A DNA stretch of 64,000 bases from Andalucia godoyi And28 (taxonomy: Eukaryota > Protista > Jakobida), in contig VRVR01000020.1 in the NCBI GenBank assembly GCA_009859145.1, positions 62,001 through 126,000 of the forward strand, read 5' to 3'. A model generated the notes under the pieces. The model was not told where the DNA came from. It saw only the letters and a program-made list of their open reading frames with translations, and searched no databases. This document shows positions 4,220-62,058 of this stretch, piece by piece. The stretch's first letter is position 1, and every line of letters starts with the position of its first letter. The position numbers and the translations under genes were made by a program.

Positions 4220-5078
4220 CAGCCTCTCCAACAGCGCTTTTGTACATACACACGTCTTTTTACATCGTTATCTTATAAATACCATTTCCTTTTTATGTGT
4301 TGATTACGACAGATGAAGGCAGTGTTCACGAGGACGGGCTCGGTTGCGAAGTAGCCGGGCGCGTACGGAGAAAGTCGGTCCAAGCGTGAACAAACGGCAA
4401 TTGGGACTCTACATCTTCGGCAAGTTTCGTAGCGGCCGGAACCATCTTCACAACCGAATCAAAGATCACCACCAGCTTTTCAGCAGCCTTTGTGTATACA
4501 TCCACGGTAAGCAAGCAAGCAAACAATTGAGTGAGTGAGTGAGAAAGACCGAGGATTGCATACTTGTTCCAGTTCAAATGAAATTGGATCTTGAATGGGT
4601 GTTTCTGTGCTCATTCTGCTTGATCGTGGCGCTGCAGTCGTTGCAGTCGTTGCAGTCGTTGCAGCCTGCAGAACACCTGGTTTTTCGTCGTTTCAGCATG
4701 CGCATTATTATTATTTTTTGGAGGGAAGCAGCCGTACGACAGAAAAATCTGGCCCCCAGGGGTTTTTGTTTTGTGGATGCGGGCTGCATCAGGCTTGCTG
4801 CTAGGGTAACGTTCGTTATTTTTTCCGTTTGTTATTATTATTATTAGTATTACAATTGCACATTTTGTTATACGTAGTTTTGAAGAAGCAGTCTTCTTAT
4901 TTGCTTAATTAACGGATTCGAGAGCGTGTCATTTCATGTGTTTATTTATTTGATTCTTGTTTTCAGAAATAGTGGTTGCTGCGTTTTCATTTTAAATTAA
5001 TCAATAGTGTTTTTTGTTGTTGTTGTTGTTGTCGTCGTCGTCGTTTTTATTTGATCGTGTATTCGTGGAGTCCGTTAC

Positions 5079-8000
5079 ATGTTTATCCGTAACGCAGCTG
5101 GAGAATATGAAGGGATATGTACGTGGGCTGAGTTGGAGACTTTGTTTCAAGCTGTAGGACTTGCTCCGCTGATTCCGCACCATGTCTTGGCTCTTTTGTG
5201 TGCGGCCCTGCGGCCGACCTCTCCATCGGGAGCATCACACAAGCACCCTGGCCGACGCATCGCAAGCTCCGCGGGACTTCGGTCTCCTGCTTCCGGAGAT
5301 CAGCCTCACTCCCAGTTTCAGCCGGGCACGGACACGAACACCCCCACCCTCTCACCGACGCAACTGCCATCTGTGGATTCCTCCTCTGTTGCCATGGCAG
5401 CGACGACGGCGGGGATACTTGCTGCAGGGGATGAATCGAAGCAACAACAAATTTCTGGGGCTTCGAATCACCAGGCGGCAATGGCTTCGAATGTGGGGTC
5501 GAATTCGCGAGGCCTTACGTTTCCCGAGCTGTGCAAAGTGTTGGAAAACAGGGAGTTTCGAAACCAGCACAACTTGACGTATAATGCGAGATCGGCATCC
5601 GAGAACCTTTCTGCGCTCTTGTCTGCGCTGTCGCTCGTGGTGGACAAACGGATAACTTTGGATGAAATTCGTGCGGTGCGACGCGCGTTTGATTACATCG
5701 CGGTTTCTCAACACTCTGCTGAAAGAGATCGTCGCGAAAAAGCCAAGAGTCAAGACGCTGCAAAGGCATTGTCCGGCTCAAGCGTCGAGAATGGTCTTAG
5801 CAAAAACAGCAACAACAACAGCAGCAGCGATGGTGGTGGTGGCGTTGAGCAGAATAGCGGAGATGCGGGTATTGCTGCCGCAGGTGGGGCTAGTCCAAGC
5901 AGCGAATTCATGAAGGAGATCCAAGCAAGTCGCAGAGCAGACTTTGAAATTGAAGGACACGCGTCGCTTCGAATTGCCCGGACTGCTGCATCGGTGGCCG
6001 CAATGTTGGATCGCTGCGGGAAACTACTCTCGCCGTCGGAAGCAGGACACATCTTGCTAAACGTCGAGCCGCCGGTTGGCTCTTTGGCGATCAAAAAGGG
6101 TGAGCAGATGAACGTCGCTTCTGGCAACGCGAATGCTGCAAAGAGCCACTCCCAGAGAGTATTGCGTGTGGGTCTGGATATTCGCTCTGATATGTACGTC
6201 CATCCAGACTCGCTGTCTCTTGACGAGGTTTTCATCATCTATCTGAGCGCACCGAAGAAGTCCGAAGCTCGATCAATCAGCCCTTTGATTTTGAGAAAGG
6301 AGGCCTCCGTGGTTGGAATGCCTGCACCCACAAAGAGCGGGGTTCCTGCTGGAAACCCTTCGTCTGTTCGTGGTTCGGTAGTTCCCGGGCTTCAACTTGG
6401 ACAGCGATCTAGTGAGAGTGGAAATCCGGTAATCGGTTCGCGGAATGCCAAAAAGGAATTGCTGTCTCCGCGGAATGGGCGGCCAGAACAAAAGTTGTAC
6501 GCGCTGTTTGATGAAACCGTGTTTCGTACGGACCGCGATCTTGTGATTGAAGACCGAGAAAACGCATTTCGAGCGGAGGCAATGGCTGCAGAGCTTGAAA
6601 AGCAGGCACGCCGAAACGATCGAAGGGGAAGAAGGTTCTCCGCGAGCGCAACTTCGCGTTCGACGACCGCGCTGAGCATCGCTTCTCCGACGCTGACTTC
6701 CGCTCCGTCGTCCGCACGTGGTTCTGCAAGACGCAAGATGTCTGCTACCAAACGCTCCAAGCCCGCAGATGACTCGGATCGCGACGAGCATGTTGTTGCC
6801 GAAACGACTTCAAACTCTGGATCCGACGGTGAATCAAGCGAAGAGGAGTTCTTGGTTTTTGAAGATCCCGAGGAAGCGATGAAGCGCAGGAAGCTCCGAC
6901 GAAAGACGCTGAGTTCGGAAAGCGACCGGCAACTTCACGCGCAAGTTGTGTCATTGATCGCTTCGTCGTCGCAACAGGTTCTGCGTGTGCGTGCTAGCCG
7001 TCCTTCGTCGAGCGGACCGACTGGTATACCCAAAACAACTCCCCGGTTTCATCCCAAAGAATCGCCATCTGGTGATGCGGATGTGAATCCGTGGGCGTCC
7101 GCAAGGAAATTGATGTCGGATGTTGATCAGAAGGCCGAGACGGCGAGAGGAAACTTGTCATTTCGACCGTCGTCCGTCCCGTCTTCTGCTCGACGCCCAG
7201 TCGATTCGGAAGCTGGTTCGCGGTTGTCCACAGTGACTCCTCGGTCAGGGACGTCGCGGTTGTCCAGCGCGCGAGGAAAGCTGAGATCTGCGTCCGATTT
7301 CGAAAGGGCCGTGCAGGAATACGGAAACTTATTCTCCGTCCGTGAATCATCTCTTGCCCAGTCTGCACGAGGAGGTGGCTCGTCAGGTCGGCTTGCTGCA
7401 AGCGACTTTGCGATCAGCTCCACTACCTTTCCGAATGCTTCTTCCGTCAAGAATGCCGACAGCAAGGCCAAGCAAAAGTCTGTCTTTCGAATAGATTCTT
7501 ATCGTGGGAGTGAACGGAGTGAAGATGCGACTACGACGTCGCCCAGTGCAATTCTTGAGGATCGAACGCATGATTCTTGTGATTTGGATTATGTTCCCAA
7601 TGAGCTGCCGGCTCCGGTTCGTCGAATTCCCAAGCCACTGGAAATCACGGGGATGTCTGCCATTCAGCGATCCGTCCCACCCATCAATCCAGAATTGTGG
7701 AAAAGGGCCACCACCCTGTTTGATTCTCTAGCCCTCCAACCGTTATCGTCCCCACAGCATGCGCCATTGAATGCGGCTCCAGCAGCACTACATGGTGCGG
7801 CGCAGGCGAAGACGAGGACCGCATCCGAGTCGAATGTAGCCAAAAGAAGCATCCACGGCAATCATATTGAAGACGTCCGTGAACGAGGCCTGGTGCACGG
7901 GGAAGAAGATCCGCATCGGCGCCTGAATCTTTTGCGAGCGCAGCCCATTCCTCCGACGCACAAGTGCATCACTCGTAGCATGAAGCAAACAATTTCCCCG

Positions 8001-22033: not shown

Positions 22034-23068
22034 TTACAGATTCTTGATGACATGGTTGGTGAATTCCGAGCAGGTAGAGTTACCACCAAGATCCTTGGTC
22101 TTGACGGATCCCTTGAGCGTCTTGAGGACTGCGTTCTCGATCTGATCGGCGTGTGTCTTGAGTCCAAGGTGTCGCAACATCATAGCACCGGAAAAGAGAA
22201 GAGCGGATGGATTGGCAAGGTCCTTTCCGGCAATATCCGGGGCAGTTCCGTGTACAGCCTCGAACAACACAGCCTTCTGCCCGTAGTTTGAGGACGCAGT
22301 AAGACCAAGGCCTCCGATCAGGCCAGCCGCAAGATCCGAAACGATGTCACCGTACAAGTTTGGCAACACCATCACATCAAACTTGGTGGGATCCTGAACC
22401 AGCATCATGCATGTTGCATCAATGATCCTCTCGTCATACGTAATCTGCGGATACTCCTTGGCAACCTTTCTGCAGCATTCCAGAAACAGTCCATCGGTAA
22501 GCTTCATAATGTTCGCCTTGTGAATCGCGCTTACCTTCTTGCGACCATTTGCAACTGCGTACTCGAATGCATATTTTGCAATACGAGTCGATGCCTTTTC
22601 CGTGATAATCTTCAGCGAAATATTCACACCATCCGTAATCACCGCCTCCTGACCGGCATACAAGTCCTCCGTGTTCTCGCGCACAATCACAATATCCACC
22701 TTTTCATATCGTGTAGGCACGGCAGCAATCGTCTTTGCAGGACGCACATTTGCGTAGATGTCCAGAGTTTGCCGGAGCGTCACATTCAGTGATTTGTGGC
22801 CCTTTCCAATCGGAGTCGCAGTCGGTCCCTTCAGGCAGACCCCGGTCCGAAGCACCGAATCCAGAGCCTCCTTTGTAATCAGAGACCCAGTCCGCTCGGC
22901 AGCCTCAGCCCCAACGTCATACGTGTCCCACACCACCGGAACACTGGCTGCAGTAAACACCTTCTGGAGCGCAGACGAGATCTCACGCCCTATTCCATCA
23001 CCTGGAAACAACGTTACCGTCCGCGAGCCTGCTGCTACTGCTGTCGAGAAAAGGCGCCGAGAAATCAT
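22034..23068 (-). CDS. IDH3A: Mitochondrial NAD-dependent isocitrate dehydrogenase, catalytic-type subunit
   Basis: Presequence MISRRLFST; [48 protein letters not shown] (metal-binding Asp residues retained), [14 protein letters not shown]. Confidence 0.93.
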
Positions 23069-39636: not shown

Positions 39637-40455
39637 TCATGAGCTAACAGATATTTGGCATTGGAATGATGACGTCCTTCTAGAGACGCTGTGACGACGA
39701 ACACATGATGGCTGTGCGTCACCATGCTGCGCTCTGTGGGCCGTTTGTGAAGGACTGACCGAGCGAGTTGTCGGAGACTGTGGACTCGAACGAGCGTGCT
39801 TTGGACTAATCTCATGGTCAGTTGGCTCGTCGCCGCAAACATCATTCTCTGCGTTCTCTTGTTTGAAGAGCATGTGGCGACCACTCCGAATCACTCCTGG
39901 TGTGTCCGATCGAACGGGAGAACGCTGCGGAGATGCCGCTCCTGTCTGATTGGTGCCGTCAGCAATAAAATCCCATGTATGAGGGCTGGGGCTTCCAACC
40001 GGACTGTGGACAATCGTCAGCTCCTGAGAGCCCGGGGTTTGTACAGTGATCAGCATGTCAACCGGTCTGTTGTGCTGTGAATTGGTGCGGCGGCGACGAT
40101 CATTAATTGTCGGACGTCTTGCAAAGTTGCGCGATGTTCTTCCCTCCACGTCGTCAAGCATCGATTTGGAACGGGAATGACCCCGGTGCAAGTTCGACGA
40201 ACTGCCGCGAAAAGAACCGCTACGAGAAAGCGCCGCGGTGCCCCACACCTCTTCTCCCGTACCTGCAGCGCAAGGGCTGGTTGACCACCTTGGAGAGGCA
40301 CAGGGACTGTTATGGAACGATCCAGAGCCTCGAGGGGATCGCGGTGACGGGCTCATTTGAGATCGGCTGGGACTGCGACCAAGCTGGGAACGAGAACCTC
40401 GTTGGGATGGCGCGACGTTGCGCGATTGCGCAGAAGTTGATGCACACGAGCCCAT
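39637..40455 (-). CDS. Hypothetical Ser/Pro/Arg-rich disordered protein starting with myristoylation-type motif MGSCAS
   Basis: ATG at 40455 gives MGSCxS; many SP sites. Confidence 0.5.
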   Translation of the reverse strand: MGSCASTSAQSRNVAPSQRGSRSQLGRSPSRSQMSPSPRSPRGSGSFHNSPCASPRWSTSPCAAGTGEEVWGTAALSRSGSFRGSSSNLHRGHSRSKSMLDDVEGRTSRNFARRPTINDRRRRTNSQHNRPVDMLITVQTPGSQELTIVHSPVGSPSPHTWDFIADGTNQTGAASPQRSPVRSDTPGVIRSGRHMLFKQENAENDVCGDEPTDHEISPKHARSSPQSPTTRSVSPSQTAHRAQHGDAQPSCVRRHSVSRRTSSFQCQISVSS

Positions 40456-41543
40456 CCTTTTTGCACGGACCCTTTGTTCAGGAACTTTGGTTGTGGAACG
40501 ACGGAAGACAGAAAGATATGCACAGCGCAACAAAAAAGAAGAAGAAGGGGTTTGACCCAACGGTGTTCTTCTGGCTCCAGGGGCTGGCACGGCGGACAGG
40601 GGGGGAGGAAAGAGGGTGTTTGAAAATTCAAAAGGGTACACACACCAGCACACGACCCTTGCGGGTACGCGCACCGGACCTTGTATGGAGAACGATCGCC
40701 CATCAACTGCACTGGAGGATCCTCCCCCACAAATGGTTCCTCCTTTGACAAGCACTGTCGCAAAGTTCTGCGCAACGAACCTTCCGATCGCACCAGATCA
40801 ATACGACGCAGTACTCAAAACGTCGCTTGTTCATGCCATCACATCTCGGTACACACGCAAATGGGCAGCACACTGGCTCCTCGACTGCTTGGCAGCTCGC
40901 ATCGATCGGATCTCCAAAATCCTCGCCGTGCGCGGATCTCTTCCCCTTTGCACCCACACACATCTTGGACTCTGCTCCCACAGGCCAGCTAATCTTTCAA
41001 AAGCCCCATCAAAATGTGATGCACGAAAATGAGCTGCGCCCTTTTTGTCTCCTTGCCTCCTTGCAGGTGTTTGACAAGCAAAAAAATCCAATGATAAAGC
41101 CTTTTGCTTTCGAATCCTGTGAAACGCTCGTGCCAGGCAAGAATCGCTTCTATCGAGGCCTTAAAAAGACAAGAAAAGTCGAAATTTTTGTGATCTTCAC
41201 AGCCCCGACGATCATCGAAATGAGGAAGGTTGGATACAGTAAAACATGTATGTTCTCATTCTGGTGATTGCCAACCTGCGTTGCACAACGTTTACTGCAA
41301 AAGAAGCCACAGCAGATGTACAATACAAAATAGAAAAGAAAAGACGGTGCCGCGGACTCTCACCCTGATTATTATTTTTTTCATGTGGGAATCTCGCAGA
41401 CGTTATGAAAAAGAAACAAAACGACGAAGAATGCCAGTAAATTTTTTACGATGACGATATATCAACACAAGAAGACGATGGAGGTGGAGGGAAAGAATAC
41501 ATGAAGATCTGTTCAGGACGGCAGCAAGCAGCAACAATGACCA

Positions 41544-42126: not shown

Positions 42127-45100
42127 CTAGGGGTCTTCAGAAGGAAGGTCATAGGCAGCAGCGCCAAAATCTTCTGGCACTTCTCTTTCGGGGCCGAGCA
42201 AGTACGTGACGGCGCTCTCGTGGCCCTTGAATAGTGAATTGACGCTCGAGAACTGGTACCACGGGCTGATGAGCTCACAAGTCTCGCGGCTCAGGTGGAC
42301 GCCATCGATCTTCGGACACGCTTGCTCCAGACGGGCTGCGTAGTTCACAGAGAGGCCGTAGATGTCGTACAAATACCGGTTCTTTGAGATGACTCCGGAC
42401 ACCACAGGGCCAGTATGCACACCGCAGCGAACATGCATTCCAAATTCGTTGGTGATCCGGATGACTTCCAAACAGAACTGCACTGCCGCAAGCGCGTCCT
42501 TGCGAACATCGAGGTCGCGTTCATGATGGGATCCGTACAAATTGGAGAAACGGAGGCCGGTGGCTCCAAACCAGCAGTCACCGATGATCTTCACCTTGAA
42601 TACACGGAAAGAATCCGCAGCAATATCAAATCGCGTGTACAGATTATCCAGAAGAGACACGATCGCACCGGGGCCTTCTGCAATTCGATTCTGACACATC
42701 GTCGAGAATCCCACAATGTCGATGAAGATGCATGAGACGTTGGTGTGAGCAAATGCGATGGGTCGTTCATTGCGCTTCAAGCGATCCACAATCGGAGCCG
42801 GCATCATGTTCAGCAACAAATCGGTCGACTTTTGCTTTTCGACCTCCAGTAAGGCGCGATTCGTCAATTCTATGGAAATATCTCGGATATAGACGTCATA
42901 AATAATGCGACCGCGCCGATGCAGTTCAGCGCCATTGGAAACGACGGTCACTGCACACGGGAACACACCGGGCTCCTTCGACTTGCCCGTCCTCTCTGAT
43001 GACGAACTCTCGCCCAAAGATAAATCTGCAGAAGAGCTCGATCGTTTCCGCGAACCACGCTGACCATGCAACCGGAACTCTCGAGATTCAACTGGTGCTT
43101 CCAAAGGGTCTATTTGCGACAGAAACCTATCAAAGTCCACGAAGGCGTCGTCACGAATGAAAAAGTCTTCCAACGGCGAGCCCAAGACATCGAATTCGGT
43201 GTGGCGAAACATGCGCAAGAACTTCATATTGGAATCCCGAACAACAAAGCGTACATCTGCTTTTGTTTTTGTGTTGTGCACACCAACTATCTGGCAAAAA
43301 GCAGCGGGCATGGTGCGAATATCCCATTGAGGACCAGTCAACATCGGAAAATGTGAAGCATTTTTGGAATCGACTTTCAAATCCAACTTGCCGCCGGAGG
43401 TCGTTGCCGATTTCGACCCATGTCTTGATTCGGCATCGTCTTCCTCGGAAGAATAATGCGATGCCCCCGAGGACATCGATTCTGCGGGCTTTTTCGATCT
43501 CAACGTCGTCGCACGGACCAACGATCCCGACGACATGAATGTGACCACACGTGGATTGGAGTACAGCGTGTCCAGCGACAGCGAGCATAAAATCTTTCGC
43601 ATCTGCAATTCACGGCGCTCCAAGTGCCGAAGTGCATTGTGGAAACAAAACAAATAAATGAGCGGAAATCCAATAAACGACACAGCAAAGAACACATTCA
43701 CAACCGTCACATACGTGTCACTTCGGTCGCTGTAGTACGAAACAAGAAGACGATACACAGTGTCGATTTTTTCTGGGATAATAGAAAACAACAGCGGTTG
43801 GAGACGATTCTTATAGATTGTCCACAACGCCGACTGATCCACCCCGGTCGCGATCATGCTGACAACATCGTCATGCGCCGTTGAGATATCTGCAGCGAGG
43901 GAACGAGCGGCGACATCGGGGAAGTACGCCGGATACAACGACGCAGAGTGAGGAGTGAAGATCGCATCTCGAATATTAGCGGAATAGTCGGAAATTCCAT
44001 TCGTGTGTGAGCCATCGCCATTGGTGAAGTATGCCCAGTTCTGAAGACCTTGCGACGAAAGTAGTTGAGATGTCTGGACATACACTGGATCCAATATTGC
44101 TTCAGAGAATTGCGGAAAGGCGATCTTCAGCAAAGACGGATAAGAGATGGGAAACAATTCGATGGCAGACCCGGCAGCTCGCGAAAAAAGGCCCAGCACA
44201 GAGGTGATATATTCCACTTCATAGATTGCCCTACGAGCGTCTGACACATACAAGAACAACACAAGCGTGAATACTTGACAATACAGCATGATAATCAACA
44301 TGGCAAACACTATCAAAAGGCCGGCGTAAAGATACCGATGAGCACCCCATTTAGTCGTGACAATCGACGCTGAGAGAGAGGACAGATGTGACTCTGCAGC
44401 ATGCACGGATTCGGGATCTGCTTGATCTAACTTTTTGCTCCGCAAAGTGTTCGTATGCAGACGAATCCCCTCCGTTGACCCTTTCCGTCGGCTCCCGCTG
44501 TTGATGTCCTGATTGGACAGATCCTTCACGATACGGGCATGCTCCTCACTGAGTGCGTACTTGTCGAAATCCAAGTTGAGAAACATCATCCTCTTTTGAT
44601 TGTTATATGTCTTCACCAGAAACGGAATAATGACGAAAGCTAAACACGCAAACGTAATGCAAAACGCACACAACGCACACGTCAGCACAACACTGAAAAG
44701 CCTGTCGACGTAATCTTCGGTCTCTTTTTGGTACCGCGGGATAGAATTTTGCACAGAGTCCCATGCAGAAACCAGACTGTTAAACCACCCTGAGAGTAAC
44801 GATTCCACGCAGATGTTCCGCAAGTTAGAAAATGGATAGGATGTGTTGGCATAATACTGCCACCCAAACAACGCTGGGTCTTGCGAACACTCAACAACCT
44901 GCTGCAGTATTGGCTCATATGCCCGAAGAACACTGGCAACAGAGATCGCAGAAAACGTGAAAGCATAATTGCTGGAAATGGTAATGTTCTGCACACTCGT
45001 ATTCACAGGAGGAAAAGGAACCTCCACGAACAATGACTGAGCGGCAATTTCGTCCCTCCAGTAAGAGTCAATAGACACTGTGTGCTGCTCGTCAAGCACA

Positions 45101-47550
45101 ACTTTGAGCATTCCACGGTATGCAGAAAGGAGTCCAGGAAACGTCATCTGGATAAATTCAACCTCTCTTGAAGACAAAAAGAATGGAAGGCCCAAGGAAC
45201 GAAACATGAGTGCAAACATTCCAATAGGCCGCCGAAGACGGGAGGCCGCCTCCAGCGGCAGTGTTGCAGCATCTGCGCCGCTGTTCTGCGATACGCTGTC
45301 ATATGAAATGGAATCACCAAGAAATTGAGTCGTGATGGGAGAACGAATGATAACACGGGATATTGCAAACAGAGCAATTAACAAAGCCATGGAAAGAAAT
45401 AGCGTTCCCAGGATCGCCATACGCATACCCCAAATTGTCGATGAATTCCGATTCATGACCGCAGATCGCAAACCTTTCAACCGTCTCGCTTCAGAAGAAT
45501 CCCCCAAAGAATTGTTCATGGACTCTGAAGAGTCCGTCGGATCTATGCTGTCCTCATCACCCCGTGTTCCAGGAGACGAAGGACTCTTGGATCTCCCTTG
45601 TGGATCGCCAGCGGGAGCGTCTGCATCCGACCGACCTTGGCTTGCAACAGAAGAAACACCTACAGAAGGAAGGGATGCATTGCCTGGCGGAAAAGGGGCT
45701 TCAATAGTAATGTACGAAGGTCGACGCGGCCTTCCCACATTCAGTTGTCGAGTACTTCCCCTCGACAAACGAGCAAGATGGTCTTCAAGCGTATCCGCTT
45801 GAAGAAGCAACCTTGCAGCGACTTCCGTGTTGTGCTCCACATCATCCAGCCACCGTGCGCGGCATCGCAGCATCTCCGGTGTTACCATTGGAATCCGCTG
45901 CAGTCGTTGAATAATCAGCGAGCCCTTCGTCTCTAGGGATTCAATGTATGACAGTATACCCCATAATCGAGACAAATCAAACGAGTCTTCCCACGAGCGA
46001 TTCGTCCACTTATGGAAGAAGTTGTGCTTTGACAAGAAAAGCTTGGTTTGCAGTTCCACCTCGGAGTGGGATGTCGTGTTCATGACCTCCTTCCAGAATG
46101 TCGCAATCCCAGCAATGACCTCGCGCCGAATGCGATCGAGTGCATTGATCTCGGTGCGGATGTGATACAGAATTAGGTTGCCGTCGGGACCAAAGGCCTG
46201 CATGGTTGAACGCAAAAACGTGAGACCATGGAAAAACTCAAAAGTCGTAGAGGCGGACCAGAGAGACGTCACCTTCTGCATGAGTGCTAACCTCACCAGG
46301 ACGGACGGCAGATTCCAAGTGGAAGCACGGCCGACGGAAAGGTTCAGCGAATATCGCATCAAGCAATACTGACCTGCAAGAAACGTGGAAAGCGGGAAAA
46401 TATCGAGTACAGCGTCAAATAGCTGCAGAACTTCATGGGCTTGATCCGGTGACACTGCCACGATCTCCGATCGTACGCAGAACGGAAATGAATGATTCTG
46501 CGGTAAATTCAGCCTACTGCGGAGCATGCTTCGCAACTTTAGATGGCAGACCAGCGCATTGGGAGCCTTCGACAGCGCGTACAAGTCACGTTCGAACAAA
46601 TCGGAGTCCGAAACCGGATCTGGCAATCCCGGCCCGCTGTTCCAGACGCGTAGACGTCGGCGGAAGCAGAGAACGGTGACGGCCCACAGCAGGATAAAAC
46701 TGCCGACGGCCACAGGAACCACAATCGCAGCTGAGCGAGATGACGATGCTTCCATGCCTATCATGAACAGGACAACAACAAAAGGGTACATCGCGAGCAG
46801 ATTGCCTTCCTGCGTATTCCAGGGCAGTACATACTGGCCAACACCTAGAATGAACACGCAGGTCGCAGAAGACGCGACATAAAAGATGATCCTTTGCCCA
46901 ACGGCTATGGACAAGAAATCAAAAAAGAAAACCAAGCCCTCGAGTAGGAACAACACAAGAGGAAAGTATCCGACAGACACGGACTGGATGGCGAAGCTCA
47001 GAGGCGAGGTCAGCGTGCAGAATAATGACAAATACAATCCGTATGTGAAGAACGTCCAACCGAAGTGCACAAACAGGATGATGCTTTCCGGACCCCCAAT
47101 TTGCGAGGAGGAGGCAACGTCGTTTGCATCTAAAGCATATGCTCTGAGCATCAGATATTGGATGGGCATTGTGGATAGAACACCCCAGCACAGCCAGCGC
47201 ACCGTACGATCCAGCAGCGACATCCCAGAATCCCCCTGCCTGAGCCGCGCGTACACAATGACAAACGAGAACAAGGAGATGAACGAGATGACGAAGAACA
47301 CCCACGTGATTGCGGTGGCTGCCGAGGAAGCTCTCATGGCCGTCCGCATGTCGTCGCGAAAGAACCAAGAAAAGCCAAACACACTCATTGACAGCGACCA
47401 CGCCAAATGAGAGAGTGCAGGTTGACAAAGGTATTGTTTTAAGCGCGATCCCGTCTCAAAAAAACTGGCAAAGTTGGTGCTCAGCAAGGAAAACGTGGTC
47501 TTCGACGAGGCCGCCTCTTCTCCATCGCTGTCCTCCCTTGACGCCGACAT
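42127..47550 (-). CDS. Large multi-TM, PAS-containing class III nucleotidyl cyclase (adenylyl-type specificity residues)
   Basis: About 10 N-terminal TM helices plus further TM clusters; PAS (NMKFLRMFRHTEFDVLGSPLEDFF...YIRDIS); signalling helix STDLLLNMMPAPIVDRLK; catalytic FIDIVGFST, KVKIIGDCW, RCGVHTGPVVSGVI, YDIYGLSVNYAARLEQ. Confidence 0.92.
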   Translation of the reverse strand: MSASREDSDGEEAASSKTTFSLLSTNFASFFETGSRLKQYLCQPALSHLAWSLSMSVFGFSWFFRDDMRTAMRASSAATAITWVFFVISFISLFSFVIVYARLRQGDSGMSLLDRTVRWLCWGVLSTMPIQYLMLRAYALDANDVASSSQIGGPESIILFVHFGWTFFTYGLYLSLFCTLTSPLSFAIQSVSVGYFPLVLFLLEGLVFFFDFLSIAVGQRIIFYVASSATCVFILGVGQYVLPWNTQEGNLLAMYPFVVVLFMIGMEASSSRSAAIVVPVAVGSFILLWAVTVLCFRRRLRVWNSGPGLPDPVSDSDLFERDLYALSKAPNALVCHLKLRSMLRSRLNLPQNHSFPFCVRSEIVAVSPDQAHEVLQLFDAVLDIFPLSTFLAGQYCLMRYSLNLSVGRASTWNLPSVLVRLALMQKVTSLWSASTTFEFFHGLTFLRSTMQAFGPDGNLILYHIRTEINALDRIRREVIAGIATFWKEVMNTTSHSEVELQTKLFLSKHNFFHKWTNRSWEDSFDLSRLWGILSYIESLETKGSLIIQRLQRIPMVTPEMLRCRARWLDDVEHNTEVAARLLLQADTLEDHLARLSRGSTRQLNVGRPRRPSYITIEAPFPPGNASLPSVGVSSVASQGRSDADAPAGDPQGRSKSPSSPGTRGDEDSIDPTDSSESMNNSLGDSSEARRLKGLRSAVMNRNSSTIWGMRMAILGTLFLSMALLIALFAISRVIIRSPITTQFLGDSISYDSVSQNSGADAATLPLEAASRLRRPIGMFALMFRSLGLPFFLSSREVEFIQMTFPGLLSAYRGMLKVVLDEQHTVSIDSYWRDEIAAQSLFVEVPFPPVNTSVQNITISSNYAFTFSAISVASVLRAYEPILQQVVECSQDPALFGWQYYANTSYPFSNLRNICVESLLSGWFNSLVSAWDSVQNSIPRYQKETEDYVDRLFSVVLTCALCAFCITFACLAFVIIPFLVKTYNNQKRMMFLNLDFDKYALSEEHARIVKDLSNQDINSGSRRKGSTEGIRLHTNTLRSKKLDQADPESVHAAESHLSSLSASIVTTKWGAHRYLYAGLLIVFAMLIIMLYCQVFTLVLFLYVSDARRAIYEVEYITSVLGLFSRAAGSAIELFPISYPSLLKIAFPQFSEAILDPVYVQTSQLLSSQGLQNWAYFTNGDGSHTNGISDYSANIRDAIFTPHSASLYPAYFPDVAARSLAADISTAHDDVVSMIATGVDQSALWTIYKNRLQPLLFSIIPEKIDTVYRLLVSYYSDRSDTYVTVVNVFFAVSFIGFPLIYLFCFHNALRHLERRELQMRKILCSLSLDTLYSNPRVVTFMSSGSLVRATTLRSKKPAESMSSGASHYSSEEDDAESRHGSKSATTSGGKLDLKVDSKNASHFPMLTGPQWDIRTMPAAFCQIVGVHNTKTKADVRFVVRDSNMKFLRMFRHTEFDVLGSPLEDFFIRDDAFVDFDRFLSQIDPLEAPVESREFRLHGQRGSRKRSSSSADLSLGESSSSERTGKSKEPGVFPCAVTVVSNGAELHRRGRIIYDVYIRDISIELTNRALLEVEKQKSTDLLLNMMPAPIVDRLKRNERPIAFAHTNVSCIFIDIVGFSTMCQNRIAEGPGAIVSLLDNLYTRFDIAADSFRVFKVKIIGDCWFGATGLRFSNLYGSHHERDLDVRKDALAAVQFCLEVIRITNEFGMHVRCGVHTGPVVSGVISKNRYLYDIYGLSVNYAARLEQACPKIDGVHLSRETCELISPWYQFSSVNSLFKGHESAVTYLLGPEREVPEDFGAAAYDLPSEDP

Positions 47551-48256
47551 GTGGTAGTTCTTTTATCCCTTCTTGTCTGTGAGAGAGTGTGTGAATGTAT
47601 GTATGAATGTGTGTGGACGTTCGTTCAAAATGAGCAAGCGAGTTATTCCCCTACACCCGCGCTACCTTTATTTTCCCTTGTCTGTACTGAAAGGCCGAAC
47701 GCAAGAATTTCACATAAGATGGACGGATCAAACGTGTGTTGCGTGTGTGCATCAAGAAACAAGAAGCGCATCTTTTTTTAAGCCAGAAAAGAGAGAATGG
47801 CATTCGAACTTGGGAGTAATGGATGCGTACATTCAAGCATTCGAAGTTGTGAGGAAAGTGGGAGATTTCCTGGGAGTTCCCGACTTCCCCTCTAGTCCCC
47901 CGAGTTTCGTCTTCCGGAGAACGCGGAGCGGAGCGACCAGTTCGCAATTCTCTGTCTCGAACATCCGACCAGGCCTGGTACCAGTGCCTTGAAAGGAGAA
48001 CTCGAAGATGCAAGAAGAACGCAACACTCCGAGCTCGCTTTTGCGGTTTCATTCGGAACGTGTGTGACGACGGGGGAGTCTCAACTACGGCAGAAACGAT
48101 CTTGTGCTCGGGTCTTTTGGAGACACCCAAGTCTCAACTCAAATCTGCAATTGACATTTTGAAGTTTTCTTCCATCGATGAATTGGAGTCTTTTGAGATT
48201 TCTGTCACATGCCGCGAAGAACTCGGTGGAACAGGAGCAGGCTTCAATTAGAAAAA

Positions 48257-48925
48257 ATGTTCAACGTGGCAAGGCAGCTCATTCCGCGGTGTTGTGCGTG
48301 TTCAATCCAGCGTGCTCCATTCCTACGCCACGCAGCATCAGCATCAGCAACACGCAGGTCACCTGCTGCGTCAAAGTTGCTGCTTTCTGCGAGGACTCCA
48401 ATTCCGCGGAGGGCACCACCGGCAAGACGCGCTGCATCAAAAGAAAAAGAAGCAAAACCGAGGGTGGAGGAGGTGGATGTGCAGGTACGGGCACAGACAC
48501 AGACAGGGATCTGCGAACAGGAGAATAGGAGTAACAAAGACGAGGAAGGTTCGTCGTTCCCGTTTCCTTCTGGTTTCCACTGGTACTTGGTCAGCATCAC
48601 AGGGAAGGATGAATTTGTAGAAAAGGTTCTTCCTCAGATGATTTCGCATTACGGATATGGGGAGCATGTTCAAGAAGTAGTCATGCCAAGGAGAAAAGAC
48701 GTGTCCTTGACAGCCAGTGCGACAGCCATCAAGGAGCGGTACGTCCCATCGCTCCCTGGATTTCTCTTGTGCAAACTGTCGTTGACAGAGCGGTCGCTGT
48801 CGTTTTTCTTGCGTCTCCCGTATGTGAACTACATCGTTCAGCCCCTTACGGAGGAACAAGCGTCGCAAATCAGAGAAAGGATTCCTGTGGTGATCCCGCT
48901 CCATCAGAATACCGACAGGTTGTAA
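48257..48925 (+). CDS. nusG: Bacterial-type NusG N-terminal (NGN) domain protein with a predicted organellar (mitochondrial-type) presequence; no KOW domain
   Basis: HWYLVSITG...VQEVVMP...PGFLLCKL...RLPYVNYIV-QPLTEEQASQI aligns by eye to the NusG NGN pattern WYVV...EVMVP...FPGYVLVQM...VPRVMGFI...PISDKEVDAI. The first about 60 aa are Arg/Ser/Ala-rich with no acidic residue. Confidence 0.75.
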   Translation: MFNVARQLIPRCCACSIQRAPFLRHAASASATRRSPAASKLLLSARTPIPRRAPPARRAASKEKEAKPRVEEVDVQVRAQTQTGICEQENRSNKDEEGSSFPFPSGFHWYLVSITGKDEFVEKVLPQMISHYGYGEHVQEVVMPRRKDVSLTASATAIKERYVPSLPGFLLCKLSLTERSLSFFLRLPYVNYIVQPLTEEQASQIRERIPVVIPLHQNTDRL

Positions 48926-49185: not shown

Positions 49186-49971
49186 CTATTGTCGACTGAG
49201 AAACAACTCTGTCACAACCGGAAAATGATCCGAGGGAAAGCGGCCGTCTCGAGAGGTGTGGTCGACCCAAGATCTCGACACTTTCCAATCATTAGACGCC
49301 CAAATAAAGTCGATGCAGTCCCCTGACCTTCGCCCACTAAACGCATGGAACGTCCCTTCCTTTGCGCCGTTGTTGGCAATCGCGAACGTGTTTGAGAATC
49401 CCTCCTTTGCAACAATGAGACACGGCTCCTCAGACGATTCGCAATTGAAGTCTCCGGTCAAGACCGTAGGAACTCGGGTGTGTTTCTTAACCTGCCGAAA
49501 GATCATCCGTACACCTTCTGTTCTTGCTTTGGCCGAGAGATGATCGAGATGTGTATTGCAGATGCACAGCGGAATTCCGCTGAGATTTTCCGTGAAGTTA
49601 ACCATGGTGCAGATACGTGGACATGCGGACATCCAGGACCGACTTCCCGGAACATCAGGCGTCTCGCTGAGCCAAAAAGTAAGAGACTCTTTTTCATTGA
49701 CAGTAAATCTCGAGGCAAGATAAAACACTGAAGAATATTCGCCGCCTGTCCAGCCGTCGTCTCGTGCTCCGCCGTACTCGCGGTACTGAGGAAAACTCTG
49801 TCGAATAGCATCCATCTGGAACCGCAGCGCTTCTTGCACACACAGAATATCAGGATTCACAGCCGCAATCGTCTGAAGAAGAAGCCCCGATCGAAACTCC
49901 CAAGAATTTGTACCATCGTCCATCGAACCCGTTCGCACATTGAACGTCATAATCCGAACAGTCCGCTCCAT
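49186..49971 (-). CDS. Endonuclease/exonuclease/phosphatase (EEP) family hydrolase, bacterial-like subfamily
   Basis: IMTFNVR, DILCVQE, FWLSETPDVPGS, NTHLDH, LTGDFN, CIDFIW, SDHFPV. Confidence 0.92.
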   Translation of the reverse strand: MERTVRIMTFNVRTGSMDDGTNSWEFRSGLLLQTIAAVNPDILCVQEALRFQMDAIRQSFPQYREYGGARDDGWTGGEYSSVFYLASRFTVNEKESLTFWLSETPDVPGSRSWMSACPRICTMVNFTENLSGIPLCICNTHLDHLSAKARTEGVRMIFRQVKKHTRVPTVLTGDFNCESSEEPCLIVAKEGFSNTFAIANNGAKEGTFHAFSGRRSGDCIDFIWASNDWKVSRSWVDHTSRDGRFPSDHFPVVTELFLSRQ

Positions 49972-51588
49972 GTTTTCTCAACTTGAAATAATTTCTTCTA
50001 CAGGTTCTACTATTAAAAAAAAGCCTAGAGACAACACACACACACACTCACTCTCTCTCTCTCTCTCTCTCTCTCTGCGCTTTTGTTACAATGTATATTA
50101 TTACTGCTATTATTATTTTTTAAAGAATAGACGATTGCAAAGAATAAAAACAAAATGTTCGCTGGTGCTGCTTGCTGGAAACTGTTCACAGAAAAAGAAA
50201 AGGAAAAGGAAAAAGGGAACCCAGAATAAATAATAACATTCATATTAAAAAATGCAGAAAGCAAGTCTATTTTCCGCCTGAAAAGAACACGTCATCCGGT
50301 AACCCCATTGAGTTCAAGTTCTCATTGAAAGACGCTGTATGAGCGCATTTGCTGAAAAGTTCCTCGATCTGGCAACAACAATTCAACACGCTTCAGCCGG
50401 AAAATGAACGGAGCTGCGCGGCGTCGCTGAACTTCAGTTATGGCCCATGAGTCCCGCATCCTTTGCTTGTGTGCGGCTCTATGACAATGAGTGCTTTCAG
50501 CGTCTCTCGACCCTGATCGCGACCGAGTGATCTGCACTTCACGGACTGACATGCCGCTTCCAATACTGCATTCAGACGCGACTGATCCCGCCCCAAAGCA
50601 CGACAACAGGAGATGCACTCTTCCGAACCATTCCTCGCGGAATGCCCAAAAAAATCGTCCTTCAGTGCCAGGACCAAGAAACGAACAGGGGGGAAGTCAA
50701 GAGCAGCCCAATCTCTTTTTCAACATTGTCTGTGTCGAAACACGGATTCAGACGGTGTGCACGATCCTTTTGTTCGCGTCCTCCAAGAACTAGTGGCTTT
50801 GGGCTTCCCGCGAGCGTTGTCTGGCCACGCTTTTGGTAAACATACATGCACAGGCTTTGCACGATCAAAAAATAATAATAGCAATCTGGAACAACTCCTT
50901 CGTTTCAGGAGATGGCCGCAACCGCAGTGTGAGTGCGCACAGTAGCATGCTCGGCGCATTGTCTTTTTTGCTTCTTCCACTGCACCTGCTTCTTCTGTCT
51001 TTCCTGTTTCATCGTTCGCTGTAGAATGTCCTCCGCACTGATCGGATTGTCGTACAACAGGAACGGAAATCCGACTTCCGTGCACAGTGTAACTCATTCA
51101 CAGTTTCGTCATTGAGACACCGCGATCCAGCAATCCTTCCTCGGGTTTCTCTGAACGAAGCGGGAGCGAGGCTGCACGACTGCGACGATCTGCATTGGTT
51201 TTTTTTTCCCCTCGGAACTTACTGCGGCCTGTCCGTTAGGTCCGGAGATTTGCGACGACGTTTTTTTTTCCTGGGAGAGTCTATTGACGACCCGCCATCG
51301 CTGCTCGCGGTCGGACGCTTTTTGGCAGAATAATCTACAATGCAAAAAACAAGGATTTTTGTTGTTGTGTCATGGCCTTAGCAACTTACTTTTCCACTGT
51401 AGCCAGAACGCATTATTCGAGTGGGTTGACCAAGGTTGAGTAGCGCACAATGCGACCAGCCTGTTTGCCAGCAAGAAAGAAAAAACACAAAAACATGTCA
51501 TTGCAAGGAAAGGAAAGAATCGACCCTTGTTGTTGCCACCTTTGATCATCTGCGGTGGGGACCAAAAAAAAAACACAAAAAACAAGAC

Positions 51589-51924
51589 ATGTTCTCTGAT
51601 GAAAATATAGAGTCGTCGGAAGAACGACTGCTGCGTCGAGAAAAGGCATCGAGAATCCTGTTCTACGCTGGGTTTGCCTGTCTTCCGATTCTGTGGCTAA
51701 TCAATGCGGCGACGTTTCTGTCGGACCAGCCGCTGTTTCACTCAACTGTGCACACGAAATCTGCACTAGTCCACAAGTTCGCTCTCTATTCTCTTTGCTG
51801 CGGTCTCGTTTCTATGATTGGGTTCGTTCTTTGGATCGGATTCATGTGGACGTTTCCGCCTTTCGAGACGGACAGCCAGTATTGGGCAGTGTCCACGAAT
51901 CCTGACGATTCTCCCATCCTCTAG
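51589..51924 (+). CDS. PSENEN: Gamma-secretase subunit PEN-2
   Basis: 111 aa; FYAGFACLPILWLINA resembles the PEN-2 GFAFLPFLWLVN motif, followed by a second TM helix. Confidence 0.8.
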   Translation: MFSDENIESSEERLLRREKASRILFYAGFACLPILWLINAATFLSDQPLFHSTVHTKSALVHKFALYSLCCGLVSMIGFVLWIGFMWTFPPFETDSQYWAVSTNPDDSPIL

Positions 51925-58084: not shown

Positions 58085-60148
58085 TTAATCGTCATATCGT
58101 CTGCGCTTGCCTCGTGGACCGTCATCGTCATCCTCGTCATCTCTGGATCGCTTTCCAAAGCGCCGTCCGTCATCCAAGTCTCTTCTTCTATTATCAAAGT
58201 CGCGATTGCGATCCTCGTACGCACGCCCACCTCGGCCCCGGTTCTCAGGACGTCCATGTCCGAACCGCGAACGCTCTGCACCCGCCATCGGATCCACTTG
58301 GCGGCCGACCATGCCGGCAGCAGCTGTTTCTTCTTCGTCGAGTGCATGGTAGCGAAGACCGACAGCTTTGGGGGTTACTACGCACATGGCATCTTTGACA
58401 CGAGCAACTTTCTCGGGGGAAGGGTTCCACTTCTCAAACCCAGCTTCGTTCTGCAACCAAAAGACATGCGTGCCAGAACGATTGGGAAGGATGCGCTCTT
58501 CAATAGAAGCACGATGTTGGAAGCCGTTCACAGAAGAGTAAGTCAGCGGTAGTGCGACAAAGTCAGCACGCTTGAAAGGAGAGGCTTCCAACATTTGCAA
58601 AGTCTTGAACGGAGGATCAAGCCATTCAGGGACAAACACAATAAATGAAATTGGCTCTGACGTCGCCGAAATTAAAGACTCCATGTGCTGAACTGCTCCT
58701 TCCATAACATCCTCTGCATACGGAGGATGAACTTGGAAAGATCCGCGAGTGGGGCGAAAATTGAAAAAAGAACCCAAAGACCCAAATGCTGCGTCGGTGT
58801 CAAGAAACAGGGAGCAATAGGAAGGAAGGTATGAGTTCAACGGAGAAGCGAAGCACTCCACGGAAACTTCAAAGTGCTCGACAAGCGATCGGAACGTCTC
58901 AGGAGTAATGGAATTCTGGAACCCAGCTCCTTCGAATTCTTGGAAGCCAAACCAGGAGCGGTAACGTCGAAGAAGCAGCCACACTCGAGTTGCACAGTCG
59001 TTGAGATCCGCGGCTGCATTGTTCCGCAGATACAAAAATTGCAACTTTTTCCAAAAAGCACGATTTAAAGTGGCCTCATCCTCACCACCTCCGTAAGACA
59101 GCCGCAAGATGTCCACGGTGTGGTCATTCGTGTCCACGTCAACGGGCTTCGTTTCCGAAGCCGCAGCATCCTTGCAAAAACCATTCAACCAAGATGCAGC
59201 TATGTCAGCATCCTCGATGACTTCGCGAATGAGTTTCTTGACAGGCTCTTCCAAGCACTTGCGAGCATACGGAATCATAGCCTCTCGAACCTCCGCCATC
59301 TTGTTGTGGAGATCCGAAGTCTGCACTTGCGCTGCTGAATCGCGAGCCCACTCCAAAGCATCTCCCAATATTTTCTGCAAGTTTGCAAGTTCTGCAGTCG
59401 AAACCAGAGAGCGTCGGTCCTCAGGCTCCATCATTTTCTTGCAAGTCTGGATCATCTCCTCTAAAACATGCTTGCCATCACGAACATTCGTGAACCTGCG
59501 CGGCTTTGCGGGAACTCCAGATAACAACTGAAACTCCAGCGCATAAGAAGAAATGCCAGCAGCTCCCATGAGACATGGGATGATTGGATCCTTGTCAAGC
59601 GCACCGGGAACCATGCAGCGTTCATGCAAGAAACGGTTATACGAATCACGGGGAGGGGCTGAACCAAGTCGATTGCGGCACCACGACTCAAAATCCGTCC
59701 GCAAATCATGCAGTCTGGACGCCCTCTTCATTTCCATAAGCCCGGATGGAGGAAGAACGGGCTGCGGGACTTCAATGCCCAGCAATGCCGCAAGATCGCA
59801 CGGTGGAGAAAGATCCCACATTGGAGTTGGAAGATTCCCCGCAACATATGCGATATCGCATTTGTCAAAGGAAACCACTTTCTGACGGACCTCCGCTGGG
59901 ACACGCTCGTTGCGAGCTGAAGAAGCCGAAGACGGCAAAGACGAAGAACCACCGGAAGAGCGTGAGAAAGACCGGTCTTTAAGCGAGGCTGACGATGAAG
60001 AAACCGGGGCAGCAGCAGCTGCTGCTGCTGCTGCTGGCAATTCTTCCTCCCATTTCGACTCTTCCGTAACCGGATTGTACAGATAACTGCGGTTCCAAGT
60101 CTTTGACCATCTAGCCTCCCAGCCCGGAGGAATCTTTGACGGATCCAT
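58085..60148 (-). CDS. PCIF1: PCIF1/CAPAM cap-specific adenosine N6-methyltransferase homolog (WW + helical + MTase domains), with a non-canonical HPPY motif
   Basis: WW domain IPPGWEARWSKTWNRSYLYNPVTEESKWE; MEMKRASRLHDLR; SYNRFLHER...DPIIP; LLLRRY; ECFASPLNSY..YCSLFLDTDAAFGSLGSF; GSFQVHPPY. Confidence 0.9.
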   Translation of the reverse strand: MDPSKIPPGWEARWSKTWNRSYLYNPVTEESKWEEELPAAAAAAAAAPVSSSSASLKDRSFSRSSGGSSSLPSSASSARNERVPAEVRQKVVSFDKCDIAYVAGNLPTPMWDLSPPCDLAALLGIEVPQPVLPPSGLMEMKRASRLHDLRTDFESWCRNRLGSAPPRDSYNRFLHERCMVPGALDKDPIIPCLMGAAGISSYALEFQLLSGVPAKPRRFTNVRDGKHVLEEMIQTCKKMMEPEDRRSLVSTAELANLQKILGDALEWARDSAAQVQTSDLHNKMAEVREAMIPYARKCLEEPVKKLIREVIEDADIAASWLNGFCKDAAASETKPVDVDTNDHTVDILRLSYGGGEDEATLNRAFWKKLQFLYLRNNAAADLNDCATRVWLLLRRYRSWFGFQEFEGAGFQNSITPETFRSLVEHFEVSVECFASPLNSYLPSYCSLFLDTDAAFGSLGSFFNFRPTRGSFQVHPPYAEDVMEGAVQHMESLISATSEPISFIVFVPEWLDPPFKTLQMLEASPFKRADFVALPLTYSSVNGFQHRASIEERILPNRSGTHVFWLQNEAGFEKWNPSPEKVARVKDAMCVVTPKAVGLRYHALDEEETAAAGMVGRQVDPMAGAERSRFGHGRPENRGRGGRAYEDRNRDFDNRRRDLDDGRRFGKRSRDDEDDDDGPRGKRRRYDD

Positions 60149-60516
60149 AAGTCTCTTTGTCAAACAGGAATGCGACAAACGACAGAGAAACGAAGTAAGA
60201 GAAAATATGCAGCAGATGCAGCAAAAGGGCCCACAAAGAAAACAAGCACAGGAAAGGCCTGCTCGCTGCAGTCCATGAACTCGTAGGCTGTTGTCTCAAG
60301 TGATGCTGTCGTGGTCCGATATTTTTTATATTGCTTCTACCAAACAAACAAAAAAGGCGTCAGGTTCAAGCGTCTTCTCGCCAACAGGCTCGGACTTGAC
60401 AGGTTTCTCGACTTCTCCGGTCTTGCCCTCCGCAGTTGCGTCTTTCTTCCACAGCCGAGAACGCCCAGGACAAGGGAAAAAGCGAAGGGGATAAGGATTT
60501 AAATTAAAAAAGAAGG

Positions 60517-62058
60517 ATGAGCGCGCCGATTCTCAAACTTCCAGCCAGCACGGGTCTGTTCATCAACAATGAGTTCGTGCGGTGCAAGAAAGGAGATCAA
60601 ATTGCAGTCGTGGATCCTGCAACCGAAGCAGTTATGACTCGTGTGGACGAAGCAGGTCCCGAGGACATAGATGCCGCAGTTCTTTCTGCGCGTCGTGCAT
60701 TTGACGATCCAAACAGCGAATGGAACAGGATCACCGCAACTCAACGTGGCCGCTTGATTTATCGACTTGCGGATGCAATTGAACGCCGGTTCAAGGAATT
60801 CCAGGCTGTGGAATCCGCAACGTCCGGAAAGGCTTTTGCAGAAGCAGAGTATGATGTGAATGCGACTTTGAACGGACTGCGGTACTATGCTGGATTCGCA
60901 GACAAGATCCATGGAAAGGTCATTCCAGTGGACGCAGAAAGTACCCTGTGCTATACACGACGAGAAGCAATCGGGGTTTGTGCGCTGATTGTTCCCTGGA
61001 ACTTCAATCTGATGATTTCTGTGGGCTGGAAAACTGCGTGCGCACTAGCTACTGGCAATGTCGTTATCCTGAAGCCGGCTGAGCAGACGCCACTGACGGC
61101 GCTGCTTGTCGCCGAGTGTGTGAAGGAAGTTGGGTTCCCCCCGGGTGTGTTCCAAGTGTTGAACGGCCGTGGCGCAGTGACTGGAGACGGGCTTGTTCGG
61201 CATGCAGGAGTCGACAAGGTTGCCTTCACTGGAAGCACCGAGGTGGGCAAGTACATCACTCGTGCTGCTGCAGATACTTTGAAGAAAGTCTCTCTGGAAT
61301 GTATGTTGTTTTGTTCTTGTTGTTGTTTATGTTTTCGTTCTAGTTTTTACTAATTTTCTTCGCATACAATAGTGGGTGGCAAGTCTCCAAACATCATTTT
61401 TGAGTCCGCGGACATTGATGCTGCTGTTGAATGGTCCTTCATGGGGACGTTTCTCAATAACGGCCAATGCTGCTGTGCTGGAACTCGTGTTTACGTCCAG
61501 CGTTCGATTTTCGACAAGTTTGTGCAGAAAATTGTCGATATTGCAGAGAAGAAGAAACTCGGGCCTCCATTGCAGCCGGGAGTTGATTACGGTCCACTCG
61601 TTTCGAAAGAGCAGTTTGACAAGGTTATGTCGTACATTGAATACGCAAAGAATGACACGAATTGCAAGATCTTGGCCGGTGGTCGACGCGAAGGGACTCG
61701 TGGCTTCTTTGTCAGGCCAACAGTCGTTCATTGCTTAACGGACACCACAAAAGTAGGTCGTGAAGAAATTTTTGGTCCTGTCATGGCCGTGTTTTGCTTT
61801 GACACGGAAGAAGAGGCAATCCACAGAGCAAATGATTCGTCGTACGGCTTGGCGTCCTCAGTCTTCACCAAGGACCATTCGCAAGCGCTGCGCGTCTCAA
61901 GCAGGCTCCGAGCCGGAACAGTCTGGATCAACAATTACAACATTGTTCCCGTGCAAGCGCCTTTTGGCGGCTTCAAGGAATCTGGAAGTGGCCGTGATCT
62001 CTCAAAGTATGCCATCGAGGGATGGACACAGACGAAGTCGGTAATATCCCGGATGTAA
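60517..62058 (+). CDS. NAD-dependent aldehyde dehydrogenase (ALDH1/2-type, no presequence); 2 exons (60517-61300, 61373-62058)
   Basis: PWNF, KPAEQTP, FTGSTEVG, spliced LE-LGGKSP (catalytic Glu), GQCCCAG (catalytic Cys), EEIFGPV, PFGGFKESG. GTATGT donor, TACTAAT branch point, TAG acceptor. Confidence 0.95.

Follow-up and report, generated by a model that had tools for sequence, protein, structure and literature searches.

Only in jakobids do mitochondria still rely on the ancestral bacterial RNA polymerase (RNAP), and the locus described here raises the question of whether the nucleus supplies this enzyme with NusG, the universally conserved elongation factor. The locus lies within a stretch of 64,000 nucleotides (hereafter, the window) spanning positions 62,001 to 126,000 of the forward strand of contig VRVR01000020.1 in the genome assembly of the jakobid Andalucia godoyi And28 (GCA_009859145.1). 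An open reading frame (ORF) in this window encodes a protein that consists of a basic N-terminal region, a linker, and an NGN domain of the kind found in bacterial NusG, with no KOW domain. On the strength of its sequence features, we infer that this nucleus-encoded NusG homolog is probably imported into the mitochondrion, where it would bind the mitochondrial RNAP and modulate elongation.

The C-terminal domain of the protein is a divergent NGN; its type is that of bacterial NusG, not that of Spt5. The initial annotation of the ORF, made from the sequence alone, had pointed to five NusG motifs, and all five are present: W109-Y110-L-V112, E140-V-V-M-P144, P167-G-F-L-L171, P188-Y-V190, and P196-L-T-E-E-Q-A-S-Q-I205. 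The Pfam NusG family (PF02357), the sole Pfam family matched even at E <= 10, aligned with amino acids (aa) 108-207 over model positions 2-86 of 93 (E-value 0.0024), and the NCBIfam nusG model, TIGR00922, aligned with aa 109-205 over positions 1-96 of 172, exactly the NGN half of the model (E-value 6.8e-7). A phmmer search against 1.84 billion representative proteins yielded three matches, namely, P0121, an ortholog of 199 aa from JGI metagenome 3300042934 (E-value 3.7e-31); P0123 (E-value 3.6e-4); and a repeat artefact, P0122. The ortholog on its own also matched Pfam NusG (E-value 0.002) and TIGR00922 (E-value 3.2e-4). P0123, an unclassified metagenomic protein, is a genuine bacterial NusG containing both NGN and KOW, with scores of 78 bits against Pfam NusG and 132 bits against TIGR00922. 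The repeat protein P0122 and CroV588, a match from the PDB, were discarded as repeat artefacts on the 'ISHYGYG' segment.

A search of the entire PDB with a two-sequence profile placed bacterial NusG NGN domains, aligned in register over about 87 residues, in all of the best 17 matches (top E-value 0.012); these came from Mycobacterium tuberculosis, Bacillus subtilis, a cyanobacterium, Escherichia coli, Thermus, Thermotoga, and Aquifex. Alignment of the two-sequence jakobid profile with a profile of E. coli NusG and P0123 using hhalign covered 104 columns, with a probability of 96.5% and an E-value of 9.3e-10; the E. coli NusG reference sequence was 100% identical to an Escherichia genome locus. 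The identity of the A. godoyi NGN domain to bacterial NGN domains is about 17-20%.

In the AlphaFold2 model of the protein, the domain core has predicted local distance difference test (pLDDT) values of 65-77, and the secondary structure elements follow the order typical of NGN, β1-α1-β2-β3-α2-β4-α3. The top nine matches in a Foldseek comparison of this model with the PDB were all bacterial NusG NGN domains (probability 0.97-1.0, E-values from 5e-3 to 5e-2, target-normalised template modelling score up to 0.69). Neither the Spt5-NGN (PF03439) and archaeal Spt5 (TIGR00405) profiles nor those of RfaH, LoaP, and UpxY matched the A. godoyi protein at E <= 10; the last three did not match P0121 either, and the control NusG, P0123, matched several. 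Spt5 and RfaH chains were also absent from the 20 PDB sequence matches and from the top Foldseek matches. As the initial annotation had anticipated, profile searches and AlphaFold modelling followed by Foldseek all recovered the bacterial NusG NGN, and the grouping with Spt5 that would have spoken against a bacterial-type factor was seen in neither profiles nor structures.

Conservation between the two orthologs is highest in the NGN core motifs, including L171 of the β3 motif. In the alignments with P0123 and E. coli NusG, L171 falls on L70 of the E. coli protein, which we take to be the counterpart of F56 in RfaH. The position of RfaH F56 and of the corresponding NusG leucine is an RNAP-binding residue (PMC7593976).

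The A. godoyi protein ends where bacterial NusG continues into KOW. In the alignment with full-length P0123, it terminates inside the linker that precedes KOW, and the TIGR00922 match stops at model position 96, the boundary between NGN and the linker. The stop position is shared by P0121, as is the terminal R-L, and no KOW domain was detected in the A. godoyi protein or in the downstream ORFs of the plus strand. The absence of KOW after NGN, recorded already in the initial annotation, is thereby borne out by the profile ends, the alignment with P0123, the conserved stop, and the downstream ORFs. A KOW exon located downstream of an intron was considered, given a GT just before the stop codon, and rejected: P0121 has the same terminal residue pair, the convergent neighbor lies only 260 bp away, and the downstream ORFs encode no KOW.

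The N-terminal region is presequence-like in composition in both orthologs and is a putative mitochondrial targeting peptide. The Arg/Ser/Ala-rich, acid-free character noticed at the outset extends over aa 1-62, the first acidic residue being E63, and the net charge of +7 over aa 1-40 is an outlier compared with the N-termini of 22 other ORFs in the window. In P0121, the N-terminus is basic as well, with the first acidic residue at position 32, and shows about 25% identity to that of the A. godoyi protein, as expected for a targeting peptide. The A. godoyi N-terminus is similar, moreover, to the presequence of a GreA homolog that appears in the A. godoyi mitoproteome table, and the mitochondrial NAD-isocitrate dehydrogenase encoded in the window has a shorter version of the same acid-free, basic N-terminus.

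P0121 shares the complete architecture of the A. godoyi protein, that is, a basic, acid-poor N-terminus, a short acidic linker, and NGN, with 51% identity in the NGN part. Over this part, the proportion of nonsynonymous differences (pN) is 0.35 and that of synonymous differences (pS) is 0.77, the latter saturated; identities at the three codon positions are 58, 73, and 34%. On a shorter time scale, two environmental alleles, carried by contigs L001 and L083 and 96% identical, differ at 15 sites within the gene; 14 of the 15 differences are synonymous, and the single replacement is in the presequence. At both time scales, the NGN gene shows strong purifying selection.

The genomic neighborhood is conserved too. 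The window and L083 share the order and orientation of five genes, NGN (+), Exo_endo_phos (-), PEN-2 (+), Dcc1 (-), and TRAP-alpha (+), with protein identities of 38-56%; the Exo_endo_phos gene, at 56% identity, remains adjacent to the NGN gene in the environmental relative, and a thioredoxin-like gene occupies a different place in the two genomes. The 96% identity of the two environmental contigs, both from JGI 3300042934, holds for the first 3.8 kb. Beyond this point, the contigs diverge: in place of the PEN-2 and Dcc1 genes that L083 (4200-7300) shares with A. godoyi, L001 encodes an 870-aa ankyrin-repeat protein (4389-7001). This difference could be due to rearrangement between haplotypes or strains, or to a chimeric assembly.

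The initial annotation had made its reading depend on a jakobid host with a bacterial-type RNAP in its mitochondrion. The isocitrate dehydrogenase ORF of the window is recorded on VRVR01000020.1, and VRVR00000000 is the nuclear genome of A. godoyi, which is the host; an apicomplexan or a plastid-bearing alga, either of which might have fitted the GC content and the long ORFs, is rejected on these grounds. According to the literature, its mitochondrial DNA (mtDNA) encodes rpoA-D, the resulting α2ββ'σ RNAP being considered the sole mitochondrial transcriptase, whereas no gene for a phage-type (T7-like) RNAP has been found in this organism (PMC7050145). The same analysis reported a divergent, nucleus-encoded, mitochondrion-targeted GreA/GreB homolog and found no Rho in A. 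godoyi (PMC7050145).

A mitochondrial elongation factor is the most likely identity of the NGN protein because the sole bacterial-type multisubunit RNAP is mitochondrial, the N-terminus is presequence-like, and the NGN core, including L171, is conserved. In bacteria, NGN contacts the β' clamp helices, the β protrusion, and the gate loop, and stabilizes the upstream DNA and the non-template strand (PMC7593976, PMC8940904). In E. coli, the anti-pausing effect requires no more than NGN (PMC8940904), and KOW mediates the contacts with Rho, S10, and the flap tip (PMC7593976, PMC8940904); the division of labor assumed at the outset, with NGN sufficient for the effect on the polymerase and KOW responsible for Rho and S10, agrees with these reports. 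By analogy, the product of the nuclear A. godoyi gene, a KOW-less NusG homolog, would be imported into the mitochondrion via its N-terminal presequence, and its NGN domain would bind, as bacterial NGN does, to the β' clamp helices and the β gate loop and protrusion of the mtDNA-encoded α2ββ'σ RNAP. Once bound, it may modulate pausing and processivity of mitochondrial transcription. NusG of Bacillus and Mycobacterium has been reported to promote pausing, and the mitochondrial effect might go in that direction or consist in suppression of pausing, as in E. coli. The half responsible for Rho and S10 coupling, KOW, would have been lost, which is consistent with the reported lack of a mitochondrial Rho and would imply that NusG-mediated coupling of transcription to translation via uS10 was either given up or achieved otherwise.

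Several observations weigh against this interpretation. The Pfam NusG score of 18.8 bits is below the curated cut-off of 22.2, and the TIGR00922 score of 29.3 bits is below the cut-off of 135.7, so that the protein cannot be filed as an equivalog NusG; the TIGR00922 shortfall is largely due to the KOW half missing from the match to this full-length model. The AlphaFold2 model was built from an alignment of two sequences and is of moderate confidence; a second run on the NGN region alone was poorer (pLDDT 44.7) and was not used. The codon bias of the ORF is weaker than that of the neighboring genes. No transcript or peptide evidence was found for the ORF, which is absent from public sets including the transcriptome-derived MMETSP and EukProt. 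An ortholog was found in one other lineage only, and none in named jakobids, across the phmmer search of 1.84 billion proteins, word-indexed protein searches, and metagenome scans. The word-indexed searches, run with the full protein and with the two-sequence profile, retrieved no further relatives; two metagenome scans for PGFLLC...FFLR.PYV, as a protein pattern and as a degenerate DNA pattern, gave no match in a collection that evidently does not include the JGI contig of P0121; and no match came from GTDB genomes scanned with the jakobid NGN as seed. Finally, the plant homolog AtNusG has been reported to make no direct contact with core Rpo subunits, and the mode of action of organellar NusGs may therefore differ in detail from that of the E. 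coli protein.

Among the six frames, that of the ORF has the best codon log-odds score; its G+C content at third codon positions (GC3), 0.56, is in line with that of its neighbors at the locus. The features of the gene and its surroundings are listed in Table 1. An in-frame ATG upstream of the assigned start would extend the product to 238 aa, with an in-frame stop located four codons 5' of this ATG; no equivalent extension is seen in P0121.

Table 1. Coordinates, within the window, of the NGN gene, its parts, and other features of the locus
Feature	Position	Strand	Description
NGN-only NusG homolog (putative presequence, linker, NGN)	48257-48925	+	Intact intronless ORF, 222 codons; start ATG 48257, stop TAA 48923-48925; product 222 aa
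Candidate 16-codon N-terminal extension	48209-48256	+	MPRRTRWNRSRLQLEK; in-frame ATG upstream of 48257
Putative mitochondrial targeting peptide, aa 1-62	48257-48442	+	11 R, 2 K, 14 A, 7 S, zero D/E
Acidic/polar linker, aa 63-107	48443-48577	+	Low conservation; about 24 aa longer than in P0121; predicted disordered (pLDDT <50)
NGN domain, aa 108-207	48578-48877	+	β1 107-114, α1 118-131, β2 138-143, β3 169-175, α2 178-184, β4 190-194, α3 199-208
β3 core motif P167-G-F-L-L-C172 ('PG[YF]xL')	48755-48772	+	Invariant in both orthologs
Short C-terminal tail	48878-48925	+	IPVVIPLHQNTDRL, then stop; protein ends where the NGN-KOW linker lies in bacterial NusG
Mitochondrial NAD-isocitrate dehydrogenase	22034-23068	-	
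ORF without Pfam match	39637-40755	-	372 aa; Ser/Arg/Pro-rich N-terminus, acid-free for 67 residues
Membrane-bound cyclase-like protein	42127-47550	-	1807 aa, single ORF
Exo_endo_phos family gene	49186-49971	-	261 aa
(CT)n/(GA)n runs	50000-50110		Microsatellite-like, intergenic
PEN-2-like short coding region	51589-51906	+	Detected by tblastn with the environmental ortholog only; 45% identity, E-value 8e-30
PCIF1-like protein	58085-60178	-	697 aa

The gene resides in a eukaryotic nuclear contig of 362,723 bp, and its neighbors in the window are typical eukaryotic nuclear genes, encoding SF3B2-like, EH-domain, Dcc1, PCIF1-like, and TRAP-alpha proteins; the compact, largely intron-free layout agrees with the published description of the A. 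godoyi genome. Downstream, the Exo_endo_phos gene, of the endonuclease/exonuclease/phosphatase family, is arranged tail-to-tail with the NGN gene across the 260-bp spacer, and farther downstream in the window, the intergenic microsatellite-like runs appear as SLSLSLSL or ERERER in translation. On the other side, the product of the divergently transcribed 1807-aa ORF, about 650-700 bp upstream, is a large multi-pass membrane protein; its C-terminal domain is a class III adenylate/guanylate cyclase (E-value 3e-30). The PEN-2-like region (PEN-2 is a gamma-secretase subunit) sits directly upstream of the convergent Dcc1 gene, and the PCIF1-like protein, of the cap-adjacent m6Am methyltransferase family, contains a WW domain and PCIF1_WW (E-value 1e-54). 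The acid-free N-terminus of the 372-aa ORF could be presequence-like or a low-complexity segment. No RNA families were detected in the window by Rfam.

The gene appears to be unannotated, given that neither the ORF nor a closely similar protein is present in a collection of 5.8 billion clusters, which includes the NCBI and EukProt proteins of the A. godoyi genome and MMETSP-derived proteins, and that exact-sequence look-ups of the 222-aa and 238-aa products gave no match. By exact sequence, the products of both the NGN gene and the adjacent Exo_endo_phos gene are missing from a public index of gene positions, in which the isocitrate dehydrogenase of the same contig is present; the annotation of this stretch of VRVR01000020.1 seems to be incomplete or to contain different gene models. 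Neither NusG nor peptide strings of the ORF were found in the text or in the accessible parts of the supplements of the A. godoyi mitoproteome paper (PMC7050145), and a survey of jakobid mtDNA makes no mention of nusG. The searched literature combined NusG with no jakobid name and did not contain the phrase 'mitochondrial NusG', in keeping with the initial annotation, which was aware of no described mitochondrial NusG.

How the gene reached the nucleus is a separate question. We tentatively entertain the possibility that this gene was inherited vertically from the alphaproteobacterial endosymbiont and would be the first for a mitochondrial NusG: a relic of the ancestral transcription machinery that moved to the nucleus, was kept only where the α2ββ'σ RNAP survived, in jakobids, and was trimmed to NGN when Rho termination was lost. 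The same protein could have the same mitochondrial role and yet derive from a later lateral transfer, from another bacterium into the ancestor of Andalucia and its relative. The occurrence of the gene in only two related lineages among more than 1.8 billion representative proteins fits such a transfer, as do the unclassified metagenomic source of the best bacterial match, P0123, and the actinobacterial, Bacillus, and cyanobacterial, rather than proteobacterial, origin of the best PDB matches; plastid NusGs likewise lack a single bacterial affinity. However, the tiny score gaps among bacterial NusGs (12-19 bits) contain no phylogenetic signal, and a second GTDB scan, seeded with E. coli NusG and P0123, returned only Enterobacterales, so that no alphaproteobacterial NusG was sampled. 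The host-like composition and the conserved nuclear neighborhood imply that any transfer would be old. Lateral acquisition appears unlikely, though far from implausible; a domain of about 100 residues that is this divergent may not allow phylogenetic resolution of its origin.

Less probable still, the protein might be mitochondrial and retain the NGN fold but act other than via RNAP, for example, in the nucleoid, in RNA binding, or in association with the mitoribosome. Its strong divergence from bacterial NGN and the loss of KOW would be compatible with such repurposing, and in bimolecular fluorescence complementation, AtNusG binds PAP9, a protein associated with the plastid-encoded polymerase (PEP), and ribosomal proteins, not core Rpo subunits. 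Nevertheless, the best-conserved residues are those of the NGN core motifs, including the leucine that matches the RNAP-contacting residue, and isolated NGN domains have no known partner other than a multisubunit RNAP, an enzyme present in the A. godoyi mitochondrion.

We consider it quite improbable that the protein is cytosolic or nuclear, with a basic N-terminus that is not a presequence. The basic region is long, about 60 aa, and the 372-aa ORF of the same window also has an acid-free, Ser/Arg-rich N-terminus. Against a location outside the mitochondrion, nuclear RNAPs use Spt5/Spt4, whereas the NGN domain here is of the bacterial type; the acid-free, Arg/Ala/Ser-rich character of the N-terminus is kept in P0121 even though its sequence is not; and the likeness to the presequence of the A. 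godoyi GreA homolog points the same way. A chance ORF, a pseudogene, or bacterial contamination, which the absence from public protein sets and the weak codon bias might have suggested, is excluded because of the purifying selection at two time scales, the conserved syntenic position among eukaryotic genes of a 362-kb nuclear contig, and the coding frame and GC3, several independent homology tests being significant as well; the initial annotation had already judged contamination unlikely from the flanking genes.

If the proposed function is correct, NusG would join the list of bacterial elongation factors serving jakobid mitochondria, on which so far only the GreA/GreB homolog has been reported. 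Bacterial-type NusG in eukaryotes has so far been described only for plastid-bearing lineages, and the A. godoyi protein would be the first outside them. It would also represent a natural 'minimal NusG' experiment, an NGN domain without KOW operating in a system without Rho. The locus bears on how the nucleus services the ancestral polymerase and on the replacement of this enzyme by a phage-type one in other eukaryotes. That such a gene is unannotated shows how divergent bacterial relics can escape query-driven surveys of the mitoproteome.

Compared with the housekeeping NusG of E. coli, M. tuberculosis, and B. subtilis, the NGN domain of the A. godoyi protein aligns end to end, with the same topology and fold and with shared positions of the WY, P, PG[YF]xL, and PxV motifs. 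The bacterial proteins, however, include KOW, which engages Rho and S10, whereas the A. godoyi protein lacks KOW, is encoded in the nucleus of a eukaryote, carries an N-terminal extension of about 105 aa, and is only about 17-20% identical to them. Eukaryotic and archaeal Spt5 as well as RfaH, LoaP, and UpxY have the same NGN fold and bind across the RNAP cleft in the same general way, but the A. godoyi protein matches none of their profiles. In animals, the nucleus-encoded elongation factor TEFM, proposed to raise the processivity of the mitochondrial transcriptase, a T7-like RNAP, would be a functional analogue of the factor proposed here; its fold is unrelated, and so is the single-subunit polymerase that it serves.

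The GreA/GreB homolog of A. godoyi (Gray et al. 2020, PMC7050145) is a parallel within the same organism, a divergent, nucleus-encoded bacterial elongation factor with a mitochondrial targeting sequence, proposed to work for the mtDNA-encoded RNAP. It belongs to a different family, acts in the secondary channel of RNAP rather than at the clamp helices, and, unlike the NGN gene, has been annotated and reported. The plastid NusG, pTAC13/AtNusG, offers a parallel in another organelle: it is a nucleus-encoded, organelle-targeted protein of the bacterial type that serves an organelle with a multisubunit RNAP. AtNusG has a 105-aa N-terminal transit peptide and associates with PEP and with uS10c and uS5c. 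The two differ in that AtNusG keeps both NGN and KOW, is targeted to plastids, and is known only from plastid-bearing lineages, whereas the A. godoyi protein is reduced to NGN and belongs to a plastid-free heterotroph in which the RNAP is mitochondrial.

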